This document shows positions 1 through 59,639 of a stretch of DNA of 64,000 nt, piece by piece. The notes below the pieces were generated by a model that was given only the letters and a program-made list of their open reading frames with translations, did not search any database and was not told the DNA's origin. Position 1 is the first letter of the stretch. Every line of letters begins with the position of its first letter. The translations under genes were made by a program, and so were the position numbers. Source of the stretch: Octopus bimaculoides (taxonomy: Eukaryota); the NCBI RefSeq assembly GCF_001194135.2, contig NC_068993.1:55604180-55668179 (forward strand), read 5' to 3'.

Positions 1-37204
<37,204 letters not shown>

Positions 37205-37952: not shown

Positions 37953-38636
37953 NNNNNNNNNNNNNNNNNNNNNNNNNNNNNNNNNNNNNNNNNNNNNNNN
38001 NNNNNNNNNNNNNNNNNNNNNNNNNNNNNNNNNNNNNNNNNNNNNNNNNNNNNNNNNNNNNNNNNNNNNNNNNNNNNNNNNNNNNNNNNNNNNNNNNNNN
38101 NNNNNNNNNNNNNNNNNNNNNNNNNNNNNNNNNNNNNNNNNNNNNNNNNNNNNNNNNNNNNNNNNNNNNNNNNNNNNNNNNNNNNNNNNNNNNNNNNNNN
38201 NNNNNNNNNNNNNNNNNNNNNNNNNNNNNNNNNNNNNNNNNNNNNNNNNNNNNNNNNNNNNNNNNNNNNNNNNNNNNNNNNNNNNNNNNNNNNNNNNNNN
38301 NNNNNNNNNNNNNNNNNNNNNNNNNNNNNNNNNNNNNNNNNNNNNNNNNNNNNNNNNNNNNNNNNNNNNNNNNNNNNNNNNNNNNNNNNNNNNNNNNNNN
38401 NNNNNNNNNNNNNNNNNNNNNNNNNNNNNNNNNNNNNNNNNNNNNNNNNNNNNNNNNNNNNNNNNNNNNNNNNNNNNNNNNNNNNNNNNNNNNNNNNNNN
38501 NNNNNNNNNNNNNNNNNNNNNNNNNNNNNNNNNNNNNNNNNNNNNNNNNNNNNNNNNNNNNNNNNNNNNNNNNNNNNNNNNNNNNNNNNNNNNNNNNNNN
38601 NNNNNNNNNNNNNNNNNNNNNNNNNNNNNNNNNNNN
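37953..38636. other. Assembly gap (N run); smaller gaps at about 308, 18611, 23477, 46010, 47869-48036 and 62875
   Basis: Runs of n. Confidence 0.99.
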
Positions 38637-40289: not shown

Positions 40290-40424
40290 ATAGTATATAT
40301 ATGTATGTGTATAATATATATATATATATAAATGTATGTATATATTATATATATGTATGTATATAATATATGTATGTATATAATATATATATATATATAA
40401 ATGTATGTATATATTATATATATG

Positions 40425-40469
<45 letters not shown>

Positions 40470-41058
40470 ATGTATATATATGTGTGTGTGTATATATGTA
40501 TAATTTTTTTTTCTAAGGCCTGGTTCTTCTTTATCCCATATTCTCACTGCTGTAACACTTGTACTTTGCATGATACTAATGTAAGCATCCGGTAACCTTT
40601 TTACTATTACTACAAGTACTATTACTCTACTACTACTACTACTACAACTGCTATTGCTAATAAGACTACAACCCCTGATTAAAAGCTGGACATTGTGTAC
40701 AAGTCATTTCTCATCCTCAATAAGATTTCATCCCACATGACCAGACAATTCTCATCTCTCTCTACTACTACTTCTACTACTACTACCACCACCACTACCA
40801 CTTACTAAGTGCCATTTTAAGTACCGGCATCAAAAGTTGCCATTTATCACCACCAACACCAACACTACATGTGCTTGTCAAGAAGTTTTAGATTTCCTCA
40901 AGCATATCTATATATATATTCCATCATATGTATACAATATGTATATATACATATGTACATGAGTATGAGTGTGTGTATATATGTATGTGTGTGCATCATG
41001 TCCCTCTATATATATATATATATATGTATATAAATTGTCATATATATGTATATGTATG

Positions 41059-41089
<31 letters not shown>

Positions 41090-41110
41090 GTGTGTATATA
41101 TATATGGTGC
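40290..41110. repeat. Compound (TA)n/(TG)n/(CTA)n microsatellite field
   Basis: Directly visible simple repeats. Confidence 0.95.
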
Positions 41111-42938: not shown

Positions 42939-43272
42939 GTGAAGGTGCATGGCTCAATGGTTACAGCATCAGGCTCACAATCATGAAGTAGTGAGTTTGA
43001 TTCCTGGACCAGACTATTGTATTCTTGAGCAAGACACTTTATTTCATGTTGCTCCAGTTCACTCAGCTGTAGAAATGAGTTGCGATGTCACTGGTGCCAA
43101 GCTATATCGGCCCTTGCCTTTCCCTTGAATAACATCAGTGGTGTGGAGAGAGGAGGCTGGTATACACAGGTGACTGCTGGTCTTCCATAAACAGCCTTGC
43201 CCGGACTTGTGCCTCGGAGAGGAACTTCCTTCGTTCAATCCCATGGTTATTCATGACCAAAGAGGGTCTTTT
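42939..43272 (+). mobile_element. tRNA-type SINE family C (GAAGGTGCATGGCT..GTGGTTAG head)
   Basis: A/B-box-like head and CTTGAGCAAGACACTTTATTTCA core shared with 57900-58212, but with a different 3' half. Confidence 0.75.
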
Positions 43273-43830: not shown

Positions 43831-45054
43831 TTTAATCCAGAACTAAGTGACTAAAATGATCACCATTCAACCACTTCCATCCTGATGGATTAAGTCTAGT
43901 CACAATGTTCACTCTTTCACATTGACCAGTTTTCAATGTGGGGCAGCCACACTCGCATGTCTGCTTTCTCTCTTGACTACTGAAGATTAATTACATTTCT
44001 CTCCTGCCATTATGGTGTTGATGTGGAAGTGTCTATAGCAGTATACCTACACTACATTAATGCTGAAGTAGAAGTAGCAGCAGTTTCATATCTGTTCCAC
44101 ATTTCCCTGCCACCCCAAATTCTCTGGCTCAAACTTCCGTTTTAAAGCGATCCAAATTAAAATCTTCCATCGAAATATTTTGTGATTCCATGTTCAAAAC
44201 ACAAGCTTGACAACGACAAGTTATTTTACTAAATTCCTCATTTTTTTGAAACAAAAGCAGTGCATTTCAATAGAACAAAAGGATGAACTACATGCAAGAG
44301 AAGCAGGGAAGAGTAATGTCCCCTTGTTCAAAACAGTCAGATTTGAAACTTGACAATTTGTTATTAGTAAACATTGATATATATGACGGAAGATGTATAG
44401 ATGATTAAGTAACCCACGGTATAGAACAGGCTCATAATTTGTCGACTTCAGCAAAATTCGAAATTTATGTCAGAATGTTGTAAGCAAACTATATCAAAAA
44501 AAAAAAGGCACAGGGTGATGTTCATATAGATATGTGTTTGTGTCATTTCAAAACATCAGCCCTCGGTTTGCATCCTATTTTGTCCAGTTTTTTAAATGTA
44601 CGTCCATATTTTGGATACATTGTGGTACGTTTTATAAAATCTTATTGAAAAATTAAGTAAAAACAATGATTTTGCTGTTGTATATTTATTGTAGAAAAGA
44701 AATTACTTGAGATTTTAGTTTTAGTTGGAGACAGGAAACAATAACTCCAAAGCAATTGTTAGTGACTTGCAGATAATTTCATATTAGAAAGATAAAGTTG
44801 GAGAATTTTTGTAAAATACTGAAATTCGAAATATGAATCTCTCAAATTAATTTCCATGTTTACTGAAAGGACTGGTAAATGTTTTTGCAAGGAAGGGACA
44901 ACTACGGATATGTTTCAGCTTCTTAGACCTCATCAGCACAGTACAGCTTCATTAAGCCTCTATAACAGTGGATAGATTTTTACAGGTGCAGGCATGGCTG
45001 AGGAGTTAAAAAGCTTTTGGAACATAATAACCGCGATAGCCGAGGGATTAGTGT

Positions 45055-45085
<31 letters not shown>

Positions 45086-45274
45086 GTGTGTGTGTATACA
45101 TGCATATATATTCTTTGTATTATATATACCTATATGTGTATATATATATATTAAGATTTAGATTCAAAATTGAATGTATGTATATATATATATATATGTA
45201 TGTGTATGTATATATCTATATGAATGTATATATATATATGTGTGTGTGTGTGTGTGCATGTATATCTGTCTATC

Positions 45275-45308
<34 letters not shown>

Positions 45309-45494: not shown

Positions 45495-45690
45495 GAGAAG
45501 GCGGGGGAGGTGTTGTTATCTGCGATGCTGATTGGTCGTTTACAAAGCATGTGACCACCATCCGCCAAAAGATGATGGGTAGGGTTTATCAAAATTGTCG
45601 CACCTGCGCAGTTGCCATTCCGATTATCTCCTCCCCTCCCTCCACATTCCTTCTCATTCTCGCACCTGTCTCTCTCTCTTTCAATTAATG
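45495..45690 (+). promoter_or_regulatory. Probable TATA-less FKBP12 promoter / 5' end
   Basis: CpG-retaining region with GC box GGCGGG (45500), inverted CCAAT (GATTGG 45529), E-box CATGTGAC (45548), TGCGCA (45605) and a pyrimidine tract about 150-210 nt upstream of the ATG; motif words only. Confidence 0.5.
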
Positions 45691-45837
45691 TTGGTTTGTG
45701 TCGAGGAGTGGAACACCAATCTTGCGGGGACCAGTTTGTTATCTTTTACTGTGTTTTAACCGAATCGAAACAGGACTCTTACGGAAGAAAAGCAACCTGC
45801 TAAATCATAGCTAGACCAATATATCTGTTTGAACAAT

Positions 45838-45874
45838 ATGGGCGTTACAGTTGAGAAAATCAGTGACGGCGACT
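45838..45874 (+). CDS. FKBP1A: FKBP12 exon 1 ([12 protein letters not shown])
   Basis: ATG at 45838; 37 nt; GACT|gtaagt. Confidence 0.93.
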
Positions 45875-48800: not shown

Positions 48801-51800
48801 TGACTGATGTACGGCTTGTCTCATTAACTTTTGTTTTGTTTATGTATATGTTCATCCATTTCAAAGAAATTATTTCATTTTGTTCAGTGAAATAAACTGG
48901 AATCAGGGTGGTTTATTTACATTATCAGTTTTAGTTTAGATAACAATTATCTATCTTACATATTTATTCAGGGTACTTCAGTCTTTTGATTAGCTAGAAA
49001 TAAGTCAAATCTTCAAATCACATCCCGTTGTCTTAAAAATGAGAAGGTCACATTATCCAGTGTAGTCTTAGATATCCTTGAAATAAAGTGATAACCACAG
49101 CTCGAATGCTTTGGATTGTAGTTTCCGTCTACCAAATCCACTCTCAAGGCTTTGGTCGGCCCGAGGCTATAGTAGAAGACACTTGCCCAAGGTGCCACAT
49201 AGTGGGAATGAACCCAGAACCATGTGGTTAGTAAGCAAGCTACTTACCACACAGCCACTCCTGCACCCAGTTGTTTTTACAAAAAGCAAAACATCAACCG
49301 TAAAAGCAGTTTATGACATGCATACAAATACGCATATAGTATGTATGGAGACAATAATATCAAGGTCAACAATGCACATGCAGGCACACATTCATTCATT
49401 GTGCTTGTTGTTGGCAGAGGTAATTGCGTTTTGAACTTTTCTGTGTTGATTTTAGTCTGGCTTTTATATATTCATAACCACTTTCACTGTTGTTTCAGTC
49501 ACTCCCTTTACAGAAGCTGTCAACTACCTCTAGGTGGTTGGCTTCTAGGCTTTTGAAAAGCATTTAATGAATGCTCTTACTACTAACTACTTCTGTGCAT
49601 CTGCTGCACACGAAATTGTTCTTTTTTCTCAGCCAACCACAGCATCTCTTGTTGACTCGTAGTTTACATTGGATGCACAGTATAAAATATAGAATTTCTG
49701 CACCTTGAGTTGAATCACTATTTGAGATGGCAGTAGAGTTGTGTATTCTTTTCTGCTAATCAAGACATTTTTTTTTCTTTGCTAGGTTTACAGGATGGTA
49801 AAATCAATGTTGCAAAACTGAAGCTTAGGTATAGGATACCTTAAAATCCTAGCAAAGTAAATGCCAAATTCCTTTGCATGACTGAAAATGTCTTGCAGAA
49901 AATATAGAATTGCTCTGCTTGAGAAGACATGTTAAGCTAAGTGGAAAAAAGGGTATGGCCAGTCTAGCTCTCACCTTACCATCTCTAGTCAATCTGTCTA
50001 ACCCATGCCAGCATGGAAAATGGACGTTAAATGATAATGAAAGAGAGTATGATCTCACCTGCCACCTGGGGCCTACATGGCCAGAGACAGAGCGGTGAAA
50101 GGAGTCCAGGGAGGGATTCCTCCTTTGGGAGGGGTGAAGCCCTGGATAAAAATAAGGAAGGTTTACTTTTAGATCTGGAACTTTTCCTCTGATTCTTTAA
50201 CTGATTTATTTACAAGGTCATTGATATTCAAGGGTGCCACCAGGCAGCCTGTCTTCAGCTGCTCTACTTTGGCCTAGAAAATTATGATAAAAAGAAGACT
50301 GAGGAATGCTTAGCTGTATCCTAAATTCCTTTTAAATTCATTGCTAACTCTCAGCATCTCTGTACATGGTTTGTACAAGTCTTACATCTCAGCCATCTAT
50401 ACCTAGTTTTCTTATTGACTACAAGAATACAGTGTGGAACCTTATTAAAAGACTTCTACAGGACAGTGAATGTTAAAAGTTTGCATCCTTTCTGTTTTAG
50501 TCCCTTAGTATTTAAACTGGCCCTCTCTGGTCCAAATATTCTTCTTGTTTTATGTTCAAACCAGCCAAATCCAACCTCTTGTACCTACTCTACAATGTCA
50601 TTCTAATATAAGTAATCACGTCATTGAAGTCTCCAAGCTATGAGATAATGTATGATTAATTCAAAACAATGTGAATAAATAAGCATTAAATTTGACAAAG
50701 TTATCTGAATGCTAAAGGTATGTATAAGTTACCAGTGTAGTATTATCACACTAATAAAAACACATGGCTTAACAGGGGCCTTTTTTCTGATTGTATCACT
50801 TTCACAAAGTATTACAAAAAAACTTCACCCAGAACTCTAGCTGCAGAGTAATTAATCCCATAGAAATTGAGTTACACATTGTAAGCGAAAGAATACTAGA
50901 CACTATCATCTTGTGAGACTGTGTCTAGGTTAACACTGTGCCAGTGTTGTATTAAGGCATGGGCACAGTAGATAGCTATCCAGGGACCTCTTGAGTTTAG
51001 GGACCCAGTTCTGATCTATGCATAGTGTGCCTTGCTATCAGTAAATAAATACTTTAGGGCACAATATATTAATTTACCTGGAGGCCTACAATGCTGCTAA
51101 GATGGCCCTGTACCATGGATATGTAACAGTGTCACCATTGAAACATTTAAATGACATCTAAATGTAGATTTATGCAGTTTGACATAGATTGAAAACTTAA
51201 ACAAAAAAAAACAAACTTTTTACAAACAGGTTTGATGAGATATGTCACTGAATTAAATATAGATATAGAAATGAATGCATGGAAGTCTTTTTTTTATTTT
51301 ACAATGATTCCTACTGGTTTAAAATAAGCAAACGCCTTTTCAATATGTTTATGGGCAACTGCGACAGAGCAGAGATAGTGGACCTGTGCATCCTAAACAA
51401 GCTAAAAGTAGGAGAGGCTGACAAAGGTTTGTACAGAGATGATAGACTAGAGATAATCCTTAATAAAAACAGATACAATATGGTCTTCTTGTTATGTTTG
51501 TCAGCAGTTGCTTGTAGTTCAGATGCTTTGTTCTCCTACCATAAGTTCTTTGTAGCTGATGATTTGGCTGAAATGTACTCCTTATGGGCAGAGTGCATTT
51601 CGTCAATGAATTTTGCAATGGTCTGATAGTTCTCATTGAACGTGTCTAGATGTTTGTGCTTGGCAAAGCCAAGAACTTCAGACACTGTCTCATATGTAAG
51701 TTGCTTTAAGCTCTTTCTGTATTGTTCAATACTAATGTGCCCTGGGTCCATTGGGGTGTTTGTCAGTGACTTCTCAATGGCAATTCTGTGACAAGCTACT

Positions 51801-53687
51801 TAGCCTTTGCTGGGACCCTGGTAGATGCTACTACTCTGGGGTCAGAGTAGATTTGGGAGCAATAGTGGCTGGAACTCCTGAACCAGGGCCCTACTACATT
51901 AGAAAAAAGTTCCTTAGGAATATTTCAGTAATTAAAGCCAAAAATCACAATAAAAATGTAAATACTTGCACTGTATTACATCATTTTAGTCTCTCTCTCT
52001 AGATTCCTGCTGTTATTTCTTGAATTTTTACTTTTATTTTCTGGTGACACCATTTATCTGCCACTCTCTCTTTCTCCAGATACATTCTTTTTTCATTATC
52101 TCTCTGCTTGCTCCCTCTATATCTATACCCTTTCTTCCTGGCTCTTACTCTCTCTCTGTGTATATATATATATCTACTGTACTTCATGCTTCCGCCGTTT
52201 CAACACACACACACACTCTGTCTGCCTGTCTCTCTCATTCATTTCTTATCTCTATTACAGGTTCCTTAGACCCATTCTAGGTTTATACTGTGGGAAAGCA
52301 GGTTCTTATGTCTTCTTTTTCCTGCTCAGTACATTCCTCCAAGATAATAATACTGTGATTGATGCTATCAATTAACTCCCACTCCTCAAATCTGCTGACC
52401 TTGTGCCAAAATCAGAACCATTACTGTAAGGGCTTAGATTCTGGTTGTCTTCGATATAAACTAGGCTTCAGACTTACAGGATATGCTGCATTTCACTCAT
52501 TCAACCCTTCAGCACTCAGATTACTCTGTCAAATGTAATGCTTATTTATTTACATTGTTTTGAATTAATTATGCATTATCTTCTATCTTTGATGTTTTGA
52601 TGAAGTGTTTGTATATTTTTAGAAAAGCATTGTGGAATAGGTGCAAGAGGCTAGATCTGGCCAGTTTGAACATAAAACTGGGAGAATATTTGGGTCACAT
52701 ATGGCCATTTTGGATGCTAGAGGGTCAACATATTACTGTATGTGAATACTTGAAATCATGTTTTTTTCTTATTATTCCACTGAATACACCACTACACATT
52801 TTACTCCATTGTACACCACTCTACTCACTGTTATACTCTTTTATACACACACACCATACTCCACTTAACACACCACTTATATCTCACTATATTCACCCCT
52901 GTATCCCACTGTATGTGTCACTCTACAACACCACTATATTCCACTATAAACACACAGTTCTCCACTAGAGCCTTGTGTACAGGCTACTGTACTCTACTGT
53001 ACACACCACTGCAATCCATTGTCTATATTTTACTATATTTTATAATCCTAATTCATCCATATTTTTACTCTTGTGACTTATTGTTGTTTAATGCCTTGTC
53101 TATCTATTTTTAGGTGAAACTTACCCCAAAAAAGGACAAAAAGCTACCGTCCATTATGTAGGTGAGTTTATTATTTTATATTGACTCTGAATCCTAGTTC
53201 AATAACCTCCAGATGGCATATTGGTTATTTGGTGTCACATCAGGATACATTTTGAGGATGACATTCATTTCATGTTCTCATTTGAAATTAGTTTCAAATC
53301 TATTTTGCAGGCTCAGCAGACTATTTTTTCTTCCTTTCATCCAAACAGACAATTCTGTTAACAAAATGAATGCAATATAATGCTAAGTTGTTTTTTTTTC
53401 TCTTCTACTTCAAAAACCTGTTTTTTATGAGAACTGTTGTGATCCATTGTTTTTTGTTTTGTCAAATTACTCTGAATAATAGATAAAGCTACTCATTGGG
53501 CAATCTTCACAGTTTATAACTGGGCGCAGACATGGTTATTAAGAAGCTTGTTTCTAAACCATATGATCCCAGGTTCAGTCCTACTGTGCAGCACTTTGAG
53601 CAAGTATCTCCTATCACAGTCCTGGGCTGACCAAAACCTTGTGAGTGATTTGGAAACTCAAAAAAATCCATTGTGTGTGTGTGTGTG

Positions 53688-53719
<32 letters not shown>

Positions 53720-56700
53720 CAGGCATAGCTGTGTGGTAAGAAGCTTGCTTCCCAACTGCATGCTTCTGGGTTCAGTCCTACTGTGTGACATCTTGGGCAA
53801 GTGTTTTCTACTATAACTTCAGGCCAACCAAAACCAGAAAAACTGCTGAACTACCAGCTATGAAGTTTGTTATTTCCTTGTCAACAAATTGTCTGCTGGT
53901 TCTGTGCTTTCAAAGATGTGTAAAATAAGGGAATAAGAGTTCTCTTGCTTGAAAAACAGGGAAGGGTTAGCAACAGGAGGAGCATTCATCTGTAACACAA
54001 TGCCTCATAATATGTATTCATCACCCCATGGTAGCATAGAAAATAGATGTTTCCACTCTCAAAGCATTGGTTAATCAAATACTTTTCCAGATTTCTTACA
54101 TAGACAGGAAATGTATTTGGGATTGTGTAATTTGATATTTCTTCTTAAGAGTATCAGGTAAGTGAACTGGTTTAAAGTAGGAGTGAAAAACTGATTAACT
54201 GAATGTTTAAAATGATGGTAGGATGTTATTGCAACTACAACAATTTTAACTATTGAACTATTCTTTTCATCTCAGCAACTCTTGCAGATGGAACCAAATT
54301 TGATTCTTCCAGAGACCGCGACAAACCATTTACATTTAAAGTTGGAGGTGGTTTTGTAATCAAAGGTAAGTAATGCTAACCACACTGCCATTTTTGTGTA
54401 CCACATGATTCTCTAAGCCCTTGTCTTTCTTATTTAAGGGCCTTTCTTTCATGAGCTCATTCCCTATTACCATTTTAACAATAACTTTTTTATGGTAAAT
54501 CAGACCAAACCATGGGATCAGGGCACTGTGTCGTATTGTAATACGGTTTGGGAACACAAGTGATTTCTTCAAATCCCCCTGCATCTTCCAGTCATTAGCA
54601 TCTTGCAGAAGTCTGGGTGTTGGATTTCTTTTGTTAACTTTCCTGCTTTGTTCCTTCTTTTTATGGAAAGCAACTTTGTATTGATTCTAATTGCATTAAT
54701 CTTGCCGCAATGTTGTTTTTGTGCATCAAGAACTTGGTCATGCTCTCAAAAATACTCTACAAGCAATGATGACTTAGATCTGTCCAGGATATGTTCCAAG
54801 GACACATATCGTCTGCACCAATGGCATTCATCCATATCACTAAACCCACATCTTTTCAGGAATCAACCTGGCTGATTCCACTTTTTATAGGGTGTTTCAT
54901 GATAGTTTCTTTTGTACAGTTGTCTCCCTTGCTTGCCTATGAACATTGAATTTTCCACACACATAAAATGACTGTTATATTATCAAAATGTTTTACGAGG
55001 CTATATAATGTTTTTCTTTCCTCTTCAGGCTGGGATGAAGGTATTACCCAGGTAACTGTTTTCTTTTTTTCACTTCCCAATATATTTTTATTTATTCATG
55101 TTTTAAATATTCTTTATAAGAAGTGTGATAAGAACTGCTTAATTGTAAAGTAAGTGTTAAGGTTGATTAAATTTAGTGGTTGTTGTTTAAACTCAGGTCA
55201 GTCTTGACTGGACATGTATGAACAAAGCTATTCTGGCTGTAACTGTAATATTCAGCCATATTAGGATTAGAGTATCCTTTCTTTTTAACATGATGATGTG
55301 AAAGAAATTTGGGTACTATTTTTAGCAGATCTTGAAAGTAAAGATTCTTTATTAGTTTGAAAATGTGATAGTTCACAAATGACTGTAGATACTCATCATC
55401 ATTATTTAATGTCTGTTTTCCATGCTGGCATGGGTTGGACGGTTTGACAGGAGCTGGTGAGGCTGGGAGCTGCACCATGTTCCAGTGGTGTGTTTTGGCA
55501 TTGTTTCTACAGTTGGATGCCCTTCCTAATGCTACCCACTTTACAGAGTGTAGTTGGTGCTTTTCATGTGGCACCCATACAGGGTCATCAAACAAATTGC
55601 AAGACAAAACTCCTCGGCTGGGAGGGGAGGTAGTATTGAATACCTAAGAATCTTAGTGGAAGAAAATCTTATCCATTCAACTGAAAATATACATTTGTCA
55701 TGAAATATTTGTTTGAAATTCATTCAATGTGTTTTCCATAGAAGTTCCCTTAGTTGTGATCCAAAGTATTTGCCACATATATTTTATGTTTTATATATGA
55801 TGTTAGGAAGGGCATCCAGCTGTAGAAACATTGCCAGATTGGATTGGAGCCTGGTGCAGCCTTCTGGCTCACCAGCCCTCAGTCAAACCGTCCAACCCAT
55901 ACCAGCATGGTGATGATGATGATACATAATAGCATAAGCAGAGATAGAATACTAGGAGAATATCTGCTTTAAATAAGCTCTTAATTATCTACATACATCA
56001 GATATTTCACAATTATTCTATTAGCTAAATTCATTCATGTTCCATAGACTATTCCTTTACTGATTATTGCAAATCATTAATGTTTTCTTTTTCTATTTTT
56101 ATTTTTTGTTATTTTATAGATGAGTGTTGGTGAAAGGTCAAAATTGATCTGCACGCCTGACTATGGATACGGTCCAAAGGGTTATCCAGGAGTATATCCT
56201 TTTGGCATGTCACATGTGAATATTTCATGCATTAAACAGGTTGAATATAGCAAACTTGCTTGGCCAGATATCAAGTTCTTGTATGAGGGAATGATTTGAG
56301 TTATAAAGTACATACATTATAGTAAGTAATAGTGATTGATTAGATAGGGAATTACTATATACTATGGCCTAGAAGTGGATGTAGTATATAATATAAACAT
56401 TCGTACATCAATCACTCTCTTTCCAAATCCTGCTGCATTTCATATGAAAAGTTTTGTCCTCCTAAGTTGTCTTGCTGTAAACGTCAACCAGCATTTTAAG
56501 CATAACTGTAGGACAACATTCAGCAATCGTTTTATTTAGGTTCTCTAATGGTTGATAACAGCAACATGTTATTACAAATAGCATGTTATGTGGCTTGGAT
56601 GTCAGCATCAAGAAAATATCACACAAAAATAATGCACATAACAAAGAGTGAATGTCACTTAGACAAAGGAAAAAACTGCATTCTACAAGTTTGTTGTTGA

Positions 56701-58522
56701 GTTATATATTCATTTTCATGTTTATGTCCACTTTTTGCAAGTTGGTATAGGTTGGATGAGGCTTAATGCTGTAGTCTTTTTTCTACTTTAGGTACAAGGC
56801 TGAAATTTGGGTGCGTGGGGGGCAGTCAATCAGAACGACCCCAGTATGCAACAGGTACTTAATTTATCAAGCCCGAAAGGATAAAAGGCAAAGTCAACCT
56901 CGACGGAATTTGAACTAAGAATGTAAAGATATGAAATATCGCTGAGTATTTCGCTTGGTATGCTAACAATTCCGCCAGCTCGCCGCCTTTTGATGCTGTA
57001 GTCTGTGGCCAGATGTCCTTATTGCTTTTAAGAAATATACTTTTTCCATCCAAGCTGTGAGACACCATTGCCCAAGGAGTGTCAGTGCAAAGACAGATGG
57101 AAGCATTCGCTCACACTTACAGAGTGAGCTTCCATATAGTTTTTGTCTACCAAATTTCACAAGGCATTTGTTAACCCAAATATGGAGAACATTTGCTCAA
57201 AGTGCCATGCTCTAGGAGTAAACTCAAAACCACATCATTTCAAAGCCAACTTTTTAACCATACAGCCATTTACGGTCAATTTTGCCACTGGTTGCTCTGG
57301 GGTCACCTTGCATTTAGCACCTATAATATGACTACTTTGCTTCTCTTTTCATCGTCATTTTTTGATGTCTGCCTTCTATACTGGCATGAACTGTGTGGTT
57401 TGAGAGGATCCGACATGTCTGCCTTGGTATGGTTTCTATGGCTGGATGCCCTTTCTAACACCAACTACTTTCTTAAAAAATAGCCTTATACTTGATGATT
57501 GTATTGGAATTCGAATGTAATGCTTAGGTGAGATGAAGACATAATTGCAAGTTGAGTGGGAACTGAGGATTTATCTCAGTTACATTTGGAAGAAATTATG
57601 TTTGTATGTGTGGTTTAGTCTTTGGTTGCCTTGATCCAGCAGACTTATGATCAGAGACATTCTGTGACCCAAAATAATGTATCTAGAACTACCTTATCTT
57701 GTGTATTGTTTTTTTTTTTTTGTAAGGTGGTAGGTTGTTGTTTGAGGGAGATTTGGCTGCTATTTCTAGTATGTAGAGACTGCATAGTAACTACCTTGTT
57801 AACTTGAACGTGTATCTATGTATGTACATATAACAATGATGTCATCAGTTTGTGTGTGTCTGGGTATGTGCTAGTTTGTAAATACATAAACATATTTGTG
57901 GCGAAGGTGCATGGCTAAGTGGTTAGGGTGTTCAGCTTGTGATCATAAGGTCGTGAGTTCGATTCTTGGCAGCATGTGGTGCCATTAAACAAGACACTTT
58001 ATTTCACATTGCTCCACTCCACTCAGCTGGCAAAAATGAGTAGTACTTACAATTTAAAGGGGCCAGCCTCGTCACATCCTGTGTCATGCTGAATCTCCCT
58101 AAAAACTACGTTAAGGGTATGTGTGCTTGTGGGGTGCTAATTTCACGAGTAGGCTGTTCCATCAATTGGATCACCTGGAACACTTATTGCTATAACTGAC
58201 AGAAAGCCAGTTAGGGGTTAAGCTTATTTGTTTACATTGCAAAATTCACTTAACATATAATCCCATCCACTGCTTCTATGCATGAATGTATGTGAGTGGG
58301 TATCTTCCTAAATTACTTACATTATATGTTTTCCTTGTCTACCATTTAATATCCTGATAAGTGTGAATGGGAAGGTGTTTGTGTGTGTTTTTTATACATT
58401 TTTGTTGTGCATTTGTACCTCTGTTACACATTATTACATCTGCTTTCCTTAACTGTCTTACTATTCCACCAAATGCAACATTAATCTTCGATGTTGAGCT
58501 CTTATCTCTCAACTCTCTTTGA
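45838..58522 (+). CDS. FKBP1A: FKBP12-type peptidyl-prolyl cis-trans isomerase, 110 aa, 6 coding exons
   Basis: Spliced product [110 protein letters not shown]; collinear with FKBP12; Y26, F36, D37, R42, F46, V55, I56, W59, Y82, I91 and F99 retained. Confidence 0.93.
47097..47520 (+). mobile_element. CRE/R2-type non-LTR retrotransposon fragment encoding a restriction-like endonuclease (frameshifted)
   Basis: Across frameshifts: [42 protein letters not shown]...[24 protein letters not shown]. Confidence 0.72.
48037..48404. mobile_element. Unclassified CpG-rich insertion with about 65-bp internal tandem repeat and TTAGGG words, apparently inside a family A SINE
   Basis: GGAAAAATACGGA.ATTATGATTC occurs twice; GGTTAGGGTTTTAGGGTTAG; SINE-A-like sequence on both sides; left end lost in a gap. 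Confidence 0.4.
49120..49263 (-). mobile_element. SINE family B (5' half), well preserved
   Basis: Reverse complement of the family B head and core. Confidence 0.8.
51345..51470 (+). mobile_element. Penelope-like reverse transcriptase fragment
   Basis: [15 protein letters not shown]...[12 protein letters not shown] resembles the PLE RT motifs MGSYDGAE..ELVGLYIL and GLYRDDGL. Confidence 0.6.
51480..51760 (-). mobile_element. RTE LINE endonuclease-RT linker fragment
   Basis: [35 protein letters not shown] resembles RTE K(H)QDWFDEND..I..LL....AH. Confidence 0.55.
52780..53040. repeat. Degenerate minisatellite (about TACACCACTATACTCCACTG) just upstream of FKBP exon 2
   Basis: Repeated ACACCACT / TACTCCACT units. 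Confidence 0.65.
53114..53161 (+). CDS. FKBP1A: FKBP12 exon 2 ([15 protein letters not shown])
   Basis: ttttag|...GTAG|gtgagt; 48 nt. Confidence 0.93.
   Translation: MKLTPKKDKKLPSIM
53523..53835 (+). mobile_element. Two tandem family B SINE 5' halves separated by (TG)n(TA)n(TG)n
   Basis: Heads at about 53523 and 53720. Confidence 0.75.
54276..54365 (+). CDS. FKBP1A: FKBP12 exon 3 ([18 protein letters not shown]...VIK)
   Basis: ctcag|...AAAG|gtaagt; 90 nt. Confidence 0.93.
55029..55051 (+). CDS. FKBP1A: FKBP12 23-nt micro-exon 4 (GWDEGITQ)
   Basis: ttcag|GCTGGGATGAAGGTATTACCCAG|gtaact; encodes W59. Confidence 0.92.
55393..55925. mobile_element. Inverted pair of family D retroposons (55393-55580 minus; 55798-55925 plus) in FKBP intron 4
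   Basis: GTTTCTACAGTTGGATGCCCTTCCTAA vs TTAGGAAGGGCATCCAGCTGTAGAAAC; CATGCTGGCATGGGTTGGACGGTTTGAC vs GTCAAACCGTCCAACCCATACCAGCATG. Confidence 0.8.
56120..56193 (+). CDS. FKBP1A: FKBP12 exon 5 ([25 protein letters not shown])
   Basis: ttatag| acceptor; ends GGAGT| before ATATCCTTTT. Confidence 0.92.
56795..56985 (-). mobile_element. SINE family A inside the U12 intron
   Basis: Reverse complement of the family A consensus, CpGs partly retained. Confidence 0.78.
57900..58212 (+). mobile_element. SINE family C inside the U12 intron
   Basis: tRNA-like head GGCTAAGTGGTTAGGG...GAGTTCGATTC. Confidence 0.8.
58462..58522 (+). CDS. FKBP1A: FKBP12 exon 6 ([19 protein letters not shown])
   Basis: Follows the AC acceptor; matches the FKBP C-terminal IPP.ATL.FDVELL; TGA 58520-58522. 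Confidence 0.93.
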
Positions 58523-59639
58523 ACCTAACCTATCTTTATACGATTATTTACTGTACATTCACGATGATGGCTACTCCTGCGACAACAATTCACCATGTGG
58601 CCAGCCCTGCAAAACTCACTCTGGGTGTCAAGTTTTTTAATATTTTCTTTTTTATCTTCTGCCATTCTATGACATAAGAGTGAAGCTGCCATTTTCATAA
58701 ATTCAAAGATTTTTACTCAAAATTTCACTTTCAAGATGTTTGCTTTTTAATTCTTTACTTTTTAAAATTTGAGTATATTTCTTGATTTTCTCTGTGTTGT
58801 TAGCTTATGGAAAGAAAATGTAGGGCTTAAGTCCTTATACTAATTTCATTCTGTACAATTTACACAGTTGTATAACAAAACTAAAAACTAGCTCTGGGAA
58901 CTATTATTTCTTACAAATTCATTTAAGTTAAAGAGGTTTTCCTTTTTTTTTTATTATTCTTTTTGATTAAATATTCTCTGATCATCTTAAATAAAATTTT
59001 CTCTGAATATCTTAAAGAATTTTGTATTTACAAACAATTTTTTGAAATATTTCCCTACCAACCTTTTAAAATTTTAGTTTTAAAAAAAAAAGAATATATT
59101 TTCAAAGTAAAAGTTAGGCCAGTATCAATGTGAAAAGGTTTTCAATAGAAAACATTCTGAAATAATTCTAAATAATAACATAATAAAACAATGTTTAGTA
59201 TTCATTTGGAAACAGTTCCTTTTCTTTGTGTTGGTTTTTGTTTATCAGATGTTGAGGAAGTCTGTCAGATTTTTTATCAAAATATTTTCATTCCAAAAAT
59301 GAAAAAAACCCCTCTATTTGCAGACAAATTTGGATAAAAGAGACACAAAGTCTTTCAAAGTGAGGATGTGTAAAATTGTAGTTAACAACAAAATTGGTCA
59401 ATAGTATTTCCTGAGATTTGAAGAACTTCTATGACACTATTATGATTCCTCTTAACAAAATTATAGATTCTCATTTGAGTGGTTTACACAAAGAATGTCA
59501 ATAAATTCCAATTCACTTAGATTGGCCAGGCTGTCTGGTGCCGAGTTGGCTCCGCTGGCCACAGCATTTGGTGCATTCCCCTTGTGCTTTTGCCATTCTC
59601 CTCCATGTTGTTCCAAACATTTCTCTTAAATTTTGACGG

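Follow-up and report, generated by a model that had tools for sequence, protein, structure and literature searches.

The last intron of the Fkbp12 gene of Octopus bimaculoides was analyzed within a 64,000-nucleotide (nt) stretch of contig NC_068993.1 (positions 55,604,180 to 55,668,179, forward strand), which is called the window here and whose own coordinates are used throughout. This intron spans window positions 56194-58461 on the + strand (2268 nt), has AT-AC termini and is very likely a U12-dependent intron, that is, a substrate of the minor spliceosome, which is ancient and has been retained in this lineage. It is a genuine and fairly ordinary member of a well-known intron class, and its value lies in intron evolution and in the correction of database models, the knowledge of how such introns work being unchanged. 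In the literature on U12 or minor introns with FKBP genes, no paper discussing an AT-AC intron of FKBP12 was found.

The boundaries were established by direct reading. Exon 5 terminates at 56193 with ...CCA GGA GT and the intron opens with ATATCCTTTT from 56194, the context at 56190-56205 being ...CCA GGA GT/ATATCCTTTTGG... (a slash marks an exon-intron boundary or intron position). At the other end, TTTCCTTAAC at 58444-58453 is followed by TGTCTT and then by AC at 58460-58461, and exon 6 opens at 58462 with T ATT CCA CCA AAT. The 56193^58462 join falls after nucleotide 272 of the coding sequence (CDS), in phase 2, and splits after its second base the codon of Val90 in the usual FKBP12 numbering (Val91 with Met as 1), where the 80s loop has its tip. 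The splicing signals are as follows.

56194-56202, + strand: U12-type 5' splice site ATATCCTTT, from direct reading and motif count.
58446-58453, + strand: U12-type branch-point sequence TCCTTAAC, matching the TCCTTRAC consensus at 8/8 positions.
58460-58461, + strand: intron-terminal AC, from direct reading and the transcript junction.

The donor thus has the /ATATCCTT form of the two U12-type 5' splice sites (/ATATCCTT or /GTATCCTT), and 9-10 nt separate the branch adenosines (58451/58452) from the end of the intron, a short spacing as in this class of introns, which need no polypyrimidine tract. Neither 8-mer is rare by itself in a 64-kb AT-rich window, where ATATCCTT was found 2 times against 3.85 expected, both strands counted, and TCCTTAAC 5 times against 2.33 expected. 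The donor and branch pairing is judged non-random because of motif placement and not because of motif rarity: ATATCCTT stands exactly where the protein homology breaks (chance ~3e-5 per position) and TCCTTAAC lies upstream of the resumed homology, within ~10 permitted positions (chance ~2e-4), which gives a joint placement chance of ~1e-8 as an order of magnitude from the motif counts.

The junction was also found in a transcript-like sequence. Logan contig L010 (run SRR32601320, 931 nt) encodes the exact protein and contains the 5' untranslated region (UTR), the whole CDS and the 3'UTR. It aligns with the window in six blocks at 99.6-100% identity and is probably of RNA origin, because all five introns are absent from it and both UTRs are present. 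In a base-by-base junction search, junctions 1-4 can each be placed on GT..AG, and the fifth has one possible placement, 56193^58462, with AT..AC termini. A second short, intron-less contig of transcript size encodes a near-identical protein (P0124). RefSeq XP_014787493.1 (Octopus bimaculoides Fkbp12 isoform X1) and the spliced product of 110 amino acids are the same sequence, so that the RefSeq annotation already contains the AT-AC junction implicitly, the excision of the intron being exact in both the contig and the protein.

The gene was located by tblastn with FKBP12, which returned six colinear coding pieces on the + strand of the window, and its structure is given below.

45632-45874, + strand: exon 1, with 5'UTR from 45632 or earlier, ATG at 45838 and donor GTAAGT (L010, tblastn, translation).
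52701-52737, + strand: alternative first coding exon of RefSeq isoform X2, within intron 1, donor GTATGT (exact N-terminus match).
53114-53161, + strand: exon 2, with GT-AG introns on both sides (L010 spliced alignment).
54276-54365, + strand: exon 3 (L010 spliced alignment).
55029-55051, + strand: exon 4, 23 nt, encoding part of G-WDEGITQ (L010 spliced alignment).
56120-56193, + strand: exon 5, 74 nt, ending with the GT of the Val90 codon (L010, tblastn).
56194-58461, + strand: AT-AC intron, with a unique transcript junction and the same intron in 8 other loci.
58462-58894 or beyond, + strand: exon 6, with the last Val90 base, stop TGA at 58520-58522 and 3'UTR (L010).

All four introns upstream of the AT-AC intron are GT-AG. 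The product carries a single FKBP_C domain (Pfam, E = 1.3e-36), and its residues 2-107 match residues 1-106 of the human FKBP12/FKBP12.6 chains without a gap (PDB search, E ~1e-43); residue 90 is thus where the split codon falls. From the FKBP_C domain, the FKBP1A/1B matches and the RefSeq name Fkbp12, the product is predicted to be an FKBP1A-type single-domain FKBP. RefSeq isoform X2 (P0002) differs from X1 only in the first coding exon, and lacks the conserved N-terminal strand. A second + strand copy of ATATCCTT, at chance level and without a paired branch motif, is located inside intron 1 at 49072-49079.

The same intron was searched for in homologous genomic loci, where it was located by tblastn and direct reading. 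An AT-AC intron at the same codon and in phase 2 was found in nine loci, O. bimaculoides included, covering cephalopods, amphioxus, sponges and two metagenome contigs. The donor ATATCC is invariant in 9/9 loci, with ATATCCTT in eight of them and ATATCCTA in Halichondria; the orthologs have the donor ATATCCT(T) and a branch sequence matching the consensus at 7-8 of 8 positions, 9-13 nt from the 3' end.

Octopus sinensis: intron of 1692 nt, donor ATATCCTTTT, branch and 3' end TCCTTGAC...AC.
Argonauta hians: intron of 307 nt, donor ATATCCTTTC, branch and 3' end TCCTTAAC...AC.
Branchiostoma floridae (two assemblies): intron of 233-235 nt, donor ATATCCTTTC, branch and 3' end ACCTTGAC...AC.
Halichondria panicea: intron of 86 nt, donor ATATCCTAAC, branch and 3' end TTCTTGAC...AC.
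Dysidea avara: intron of 712 nt, donor ATATCCTTAT, branch and 3' end GCCTTAAC...AC.

Halichondria panicea and Dysidea avara are the two demosponges carrying the intron. A metagenome scan for CCNGGNGTATATCCTT returned 120 loci, of which two are FKBP genes and the rest chance matches. The first FKBP gene lies on a sponge-like contig (L074), has an AT-AC intron, and its encoded peptide shares 94% identity with Suberites FKBP12. The other is the end of a divergent eukaryotic FKBP gene on contig Ga0056129_1011788 (L077; reverse strand, ~574-1715), where an AT-AC intron of ~1 kb separates LSVGQRVKMTCPPKYGYGKRGFPGV from IPADSTLIFDIELVSMQ. An intron at the Val90 site was found to be absent in Owenia fusiformis (annelid), Macrobrachium rosenbergii (prawn), a shark assembly and Umbelopsis isabellina (mucoralean fungus), the last having a different intron ten codons upstream of the site.

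The simplest history would be that this minor intron predates the split between sponges and bilaterians and was cleanly lost repeatedly afterwards. The sampled loci point to outright loss rather than conversion to the U2 type, including in the sampled vertebrate. A published survey has reported that molluscs are relatively rich in minor introns, that ancestral animal densities were at least those of human and that loss is frequent, and it documents minor introns in Octopus sinensis (PMC10639083). The sequence-only reading, which had been made from the letters of the window, had proposed an AT-AC intron with these ends splitting Val90 in the 80s loop, a U12 signature of donor, branch and AC, and an ancient origin, and had named the 56193^58462 junction as the evidence to be sought. 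The ends hold to the base, the signature proved to be a perfect consensus with short spacing whose motifs are kept in the orthologs, and the junction was recovered in L010 as the sole possible placement, together with the exact RefSeq protein; the ancient origin agrees with the presence of the intron in cephalopods, amphioxus, sponges and the two metagenomic contigs.

The consequences of failing to remove the intron were examined by translation. Retention adds 34 foreign residues up to a stop at 56297-56299, and Phe99 and the last beta-strand are then lost; the read-through sequence and this loss agree with the earlier reading. The earlier statement that no GT-AG solution restores the C-terminal strand was too strong, as five in-frame GT/GC-AG solutions retain it, all of them with the AG at 58373-58374; no AG was found in the window sequence between 58375 and 58461. 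Each of these five drops a part of exon 5 or adds junk residues, and they are biologically implausible. Only the 56193^58462 join yields the complete FKBP fold. The expectation that gene finders limited to GT-AG introns would go wrong here was borne out by two database entries, UniProt A0A0L8FRX8 (A0A0L8FRX8_OCTBM, 168 amino acids) and CAI9732154.1 of Octopus vulgaris (108 amino acids). The former reads through the donor (GVYPFGMS...KFL) and re-enters the frame by a GT-AG join 56281/58374, which introduces 58 spurious residues; the latter likewise reads into the intron (GVYPFGMSQ...). Both entries are mis-modelled because the AT-AC intron went unrecognised.

56281-58374, + strand: spurious GT-AG "intron" of the old 168-residue model, contradicted by transcript L010.

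In the probable removal of the intron by the minor spliceosome, U11 and U6atac would recognise the donor ATATCCTTT, U12 would pair with TCCTTAAC at 9-10 nt from the 3' end, and catalysis would use U4atac/U6atac and U5, as expected from the mechanism of the class. The output of functional FKBP12 mRNA thus probably depends on the minor spliceosome, since only the correct join encodes the complete fold. A transcript retaining the intron would probably not be a classical target of nonsense-mediated decay, because this is the last intron and no junction lies downstream.

The interior of the intron was compared between the two Octopus species. In blastn of the O. bimaculoides intron against that of O. 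sinensis, only 56194-56453 and 58139-58461 align, at 85-93% identity, a level that the gene's other introns also reach; a conserved intronic element was considered and dropped on this ground. The remaining part contains repeats, including short interspersed elements (SINEs).

56454-58138: lineage-specific insertion block of ~1.7 kb, with no counterpart in the O. sinensis intron.
56778-56992, - strand: SINE of 215 nt, antisense to the gene, with 8 other copies in the window and a target-site duplication.
57903-58041, + strand: second SINE-like repeat with a tRNA-like head, and a copy at 42941-43080.

The antisense SINE is bounded by a 12-bp target-site duplication, ATGCTGTAGTCT, at 56766-56777 and 56993-57004. 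Read on the + strand, its A-rich tail gives a run of T and then TTTAG (56778-56792). The earlier reading had correctly recognised an antisense SINE in the intron and had placed a U2-type AG acceptor near 56790 in its flank, but the AG at 56791-56792 lies inside the element, and no use of it occurs in L010 or in either RefSeq isoform. The count of three retroposons was roughly right: one is a clear SINE with its target-site duplication, and the others are the SINE-like repeat and fragments, short pieces of repeat being found at 57417-57469 and 57717-57768. No convincing target-site duplication was found for the 57903-58041 repeat or for the whole 56454-58138 block. ARAGORN and Rfam (gathering and E-value thresholds) detected nothing in the intron or the window; by these programs no known RNA, snoRNAs included, is hosted by the intron, and no SINE head was identified as a tRNA. 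The O. sinensis intron contains two copies of a different repeat (22762-22860 and 23596-23710 of locus L011). As the repeats differ between the species, the same intron was apparently expanded independently in both, and in Octopus species-specific SINE insertions appear to have enlarged it to 1.7-2.3 kb, the starting length being a few hundred bases. This shows that a U12 intron can take up kilobase-scale, species-specific SINE insertions and yet keep its signals. In the window, the O. sinensis intronic repeat occurs only in intron 4 (55802-55910).

Several points weigh against the reading of this intron as an ancient U12-type intron. Its assignment to the minor spliceosome was made by consensus matching and chance estimates and hence rests on motifs, and the branch-to-3' spacing of 9-10 nt sits at the short end of the range for the U12 class. 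The ancestry is a parsimony argument on a patchy sample of cephalopods, amphioxus, sponges, an annelid, a prawn, a shark, a fungus and two metagenome contigs, and the RNA origin of L010 is deduced from the absence of the introns. Some AT-AC introns, a small subclass, are known to be spliced by the major spliceosome. The class of an intron cannot be told from AT-AC termini alone (PMC7367187). Removal by the major (U2-type) spliceosome is nevertheless extremely unlikely here, since the donor is ATATCCTTT and not ATAAGT-like as in U2-type AT-AC introns, a perfect TCCTTAAC at 9-10 nt from the 3' end occupies the position of the polypyrimidine tract, and conservation from sponge to octopus holds for both motifs but not for other parts of the intron. 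In the 168-residue model of A0A0L8FRX8, the true intron would be the GT-AG one at 56281-58374 and the 80s loop of the FKBP would contain an insert of 58 residues; the frame is maintained and the C-terminal strand preserved. This model has next to no probability of being correct, as L010 joins 56193 to 58462 instead, the insert has no homolog in any FKBP12 relative aligned, the acceptor at 58374 is preceded by the purine-rich TGATAAGTGTGAATGGGAAG and not by a pyrimidine tract, and the model has since been replaced by RefSeq.

Independent gain of the intron at one site in cephalopods, amphioxus and sponges would fit its patchy distribution, with four sampled lineages lacking it, and the uniform exon context GT/T in Gly-Val-Ile-Pro-Pro makes a shared "proto-splice site" conceivable. 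The codon, the phase, the rare AT-AC subtype and the motifs are, however, identical in 9/9 loci, and gain of minor introns is held to be very rare and their loss common (PMC10639083), making an origin other than ancestral very unlikely. A different question is whether the ancient minor intron has been selected as a regulatory switch, with slow or stress-sensitive splicing limiting the FKBP12 dosage and the antisense SINE offering a U2-type acceptor near 56790. In human cells, minor introns are able to restrict expression and are responsive to the U6atac level (PMC3728624), a complete fold is encoded only by the correctly spliced mRNA, and the T-run with TTTAG at 56778-56792 is acceptor-like. 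Such a role is unlikely on the present evidence. No retention or alternative-acceptor transcript was seen among L010 and the two RefSeq isoforms, whose sole difference is the first exon. A U2-type AG acceptor is of no use to an AT donor, and the one GT close by (56192, GTATAT) forms a weak U2 donor. Further, O. sinensis does not have the SINE, which would make any use of the SINE acceptor very recent, and intronic identity to that species (89-93%) stays within the range of the other introns. Repeated loss without visible consequence, and a pan-eukaryotic survey favouring largely neutral evolution (PMC10639083), also speak against it. That the intron is a retained dosage gate and not a neutral relic, every unspliced or mis-spliced product being without the last strand, is also unlikely; if true, the output of FKBP12, and thus the regulation of TOR, calcineurin and the ryanodine receptor, would be tied to the activity of the minor spliceosome (e.g. 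the U6atac level), and this tie would hold in cephalopods, amphioxus and sponges.

In comparison to known U12-type AT-AC introns, the octopus intron is a typical one. The minor introns of human POLE2 and CACNA1I have the same intronic 9-mers (Olthof 2019 tables, PMC6717393), and they share with the octopus intron the ATATCCTTT donor, TCCTTRAC near the 3' end, the AC terminus, a non-zero phase, the position of a lone minor intron among GT-AG introns and a deep positional conservation. In contrast to these two genes, FKBP12/FKBP1A is not among the human and mouse minor-intron genes listed, the only FKBP gene among the listed entries being FKBP3 (PMC6717393). Human FKBP1A probably lacks an intron at the Val90 codon, as the earlier reading had held; the listed entries and the intron-less site of the shark ortholog are consistent with this. 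Vertebrate FKBP3 (FKBP25) likewise has a minor-class intron in an FKBP-domain gene, with donor CAA/GTATCCTTT and branch TTTTCCTTGACC (PMC6717393), whereas it is of the GT-AG subtype and belongs to another paralog. It is conceivable, though unlikely, that the two introns descend from one ancestral FKBP-domain minor intron. As regards vertebrate FKBP1A/FKBP1B, the octopus protein can be matched to human FKBP12 without a gap over octopus residues 2-107, with 63% identity to the human sequence. The shark gene has intron positions in common with the octopus gene after GD, after HY(T/V)G and after AQ/TQ, whereas its MSVGQ...LE is encoded by one undivided last exon. Two introns are additional in the octopus gene: that in the (K/R)-G-W codons (VIKG/WDEG) and the AT-AC intron. 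An apparently ancestral minor intron thus survives in cephalopods, amphioxus and sponges, and the sampled shark is without it.

These outcomes suggest that FKBP12 should be added to the genes with a minor-class intron in the earliest animals, and that the sampled annelid, crustacean and shark provide a clean case of outright loss and not of conversion. They also account for the errors in two database models, UniProt A0A0L8FRX8 and O. vulgaris CAI9732154.1. Elsewhere in the window, long (TA)n or AT-rich tandem arrays were noted at 40294-40481, 41007-41105 and 45054-45292, the last of which precedes the Fkbp12 5'UTR by a few hundred bases, and a run of N (assembly gap) at 37954-38636 explains why the GC content seems to dip at 38-40 kb.

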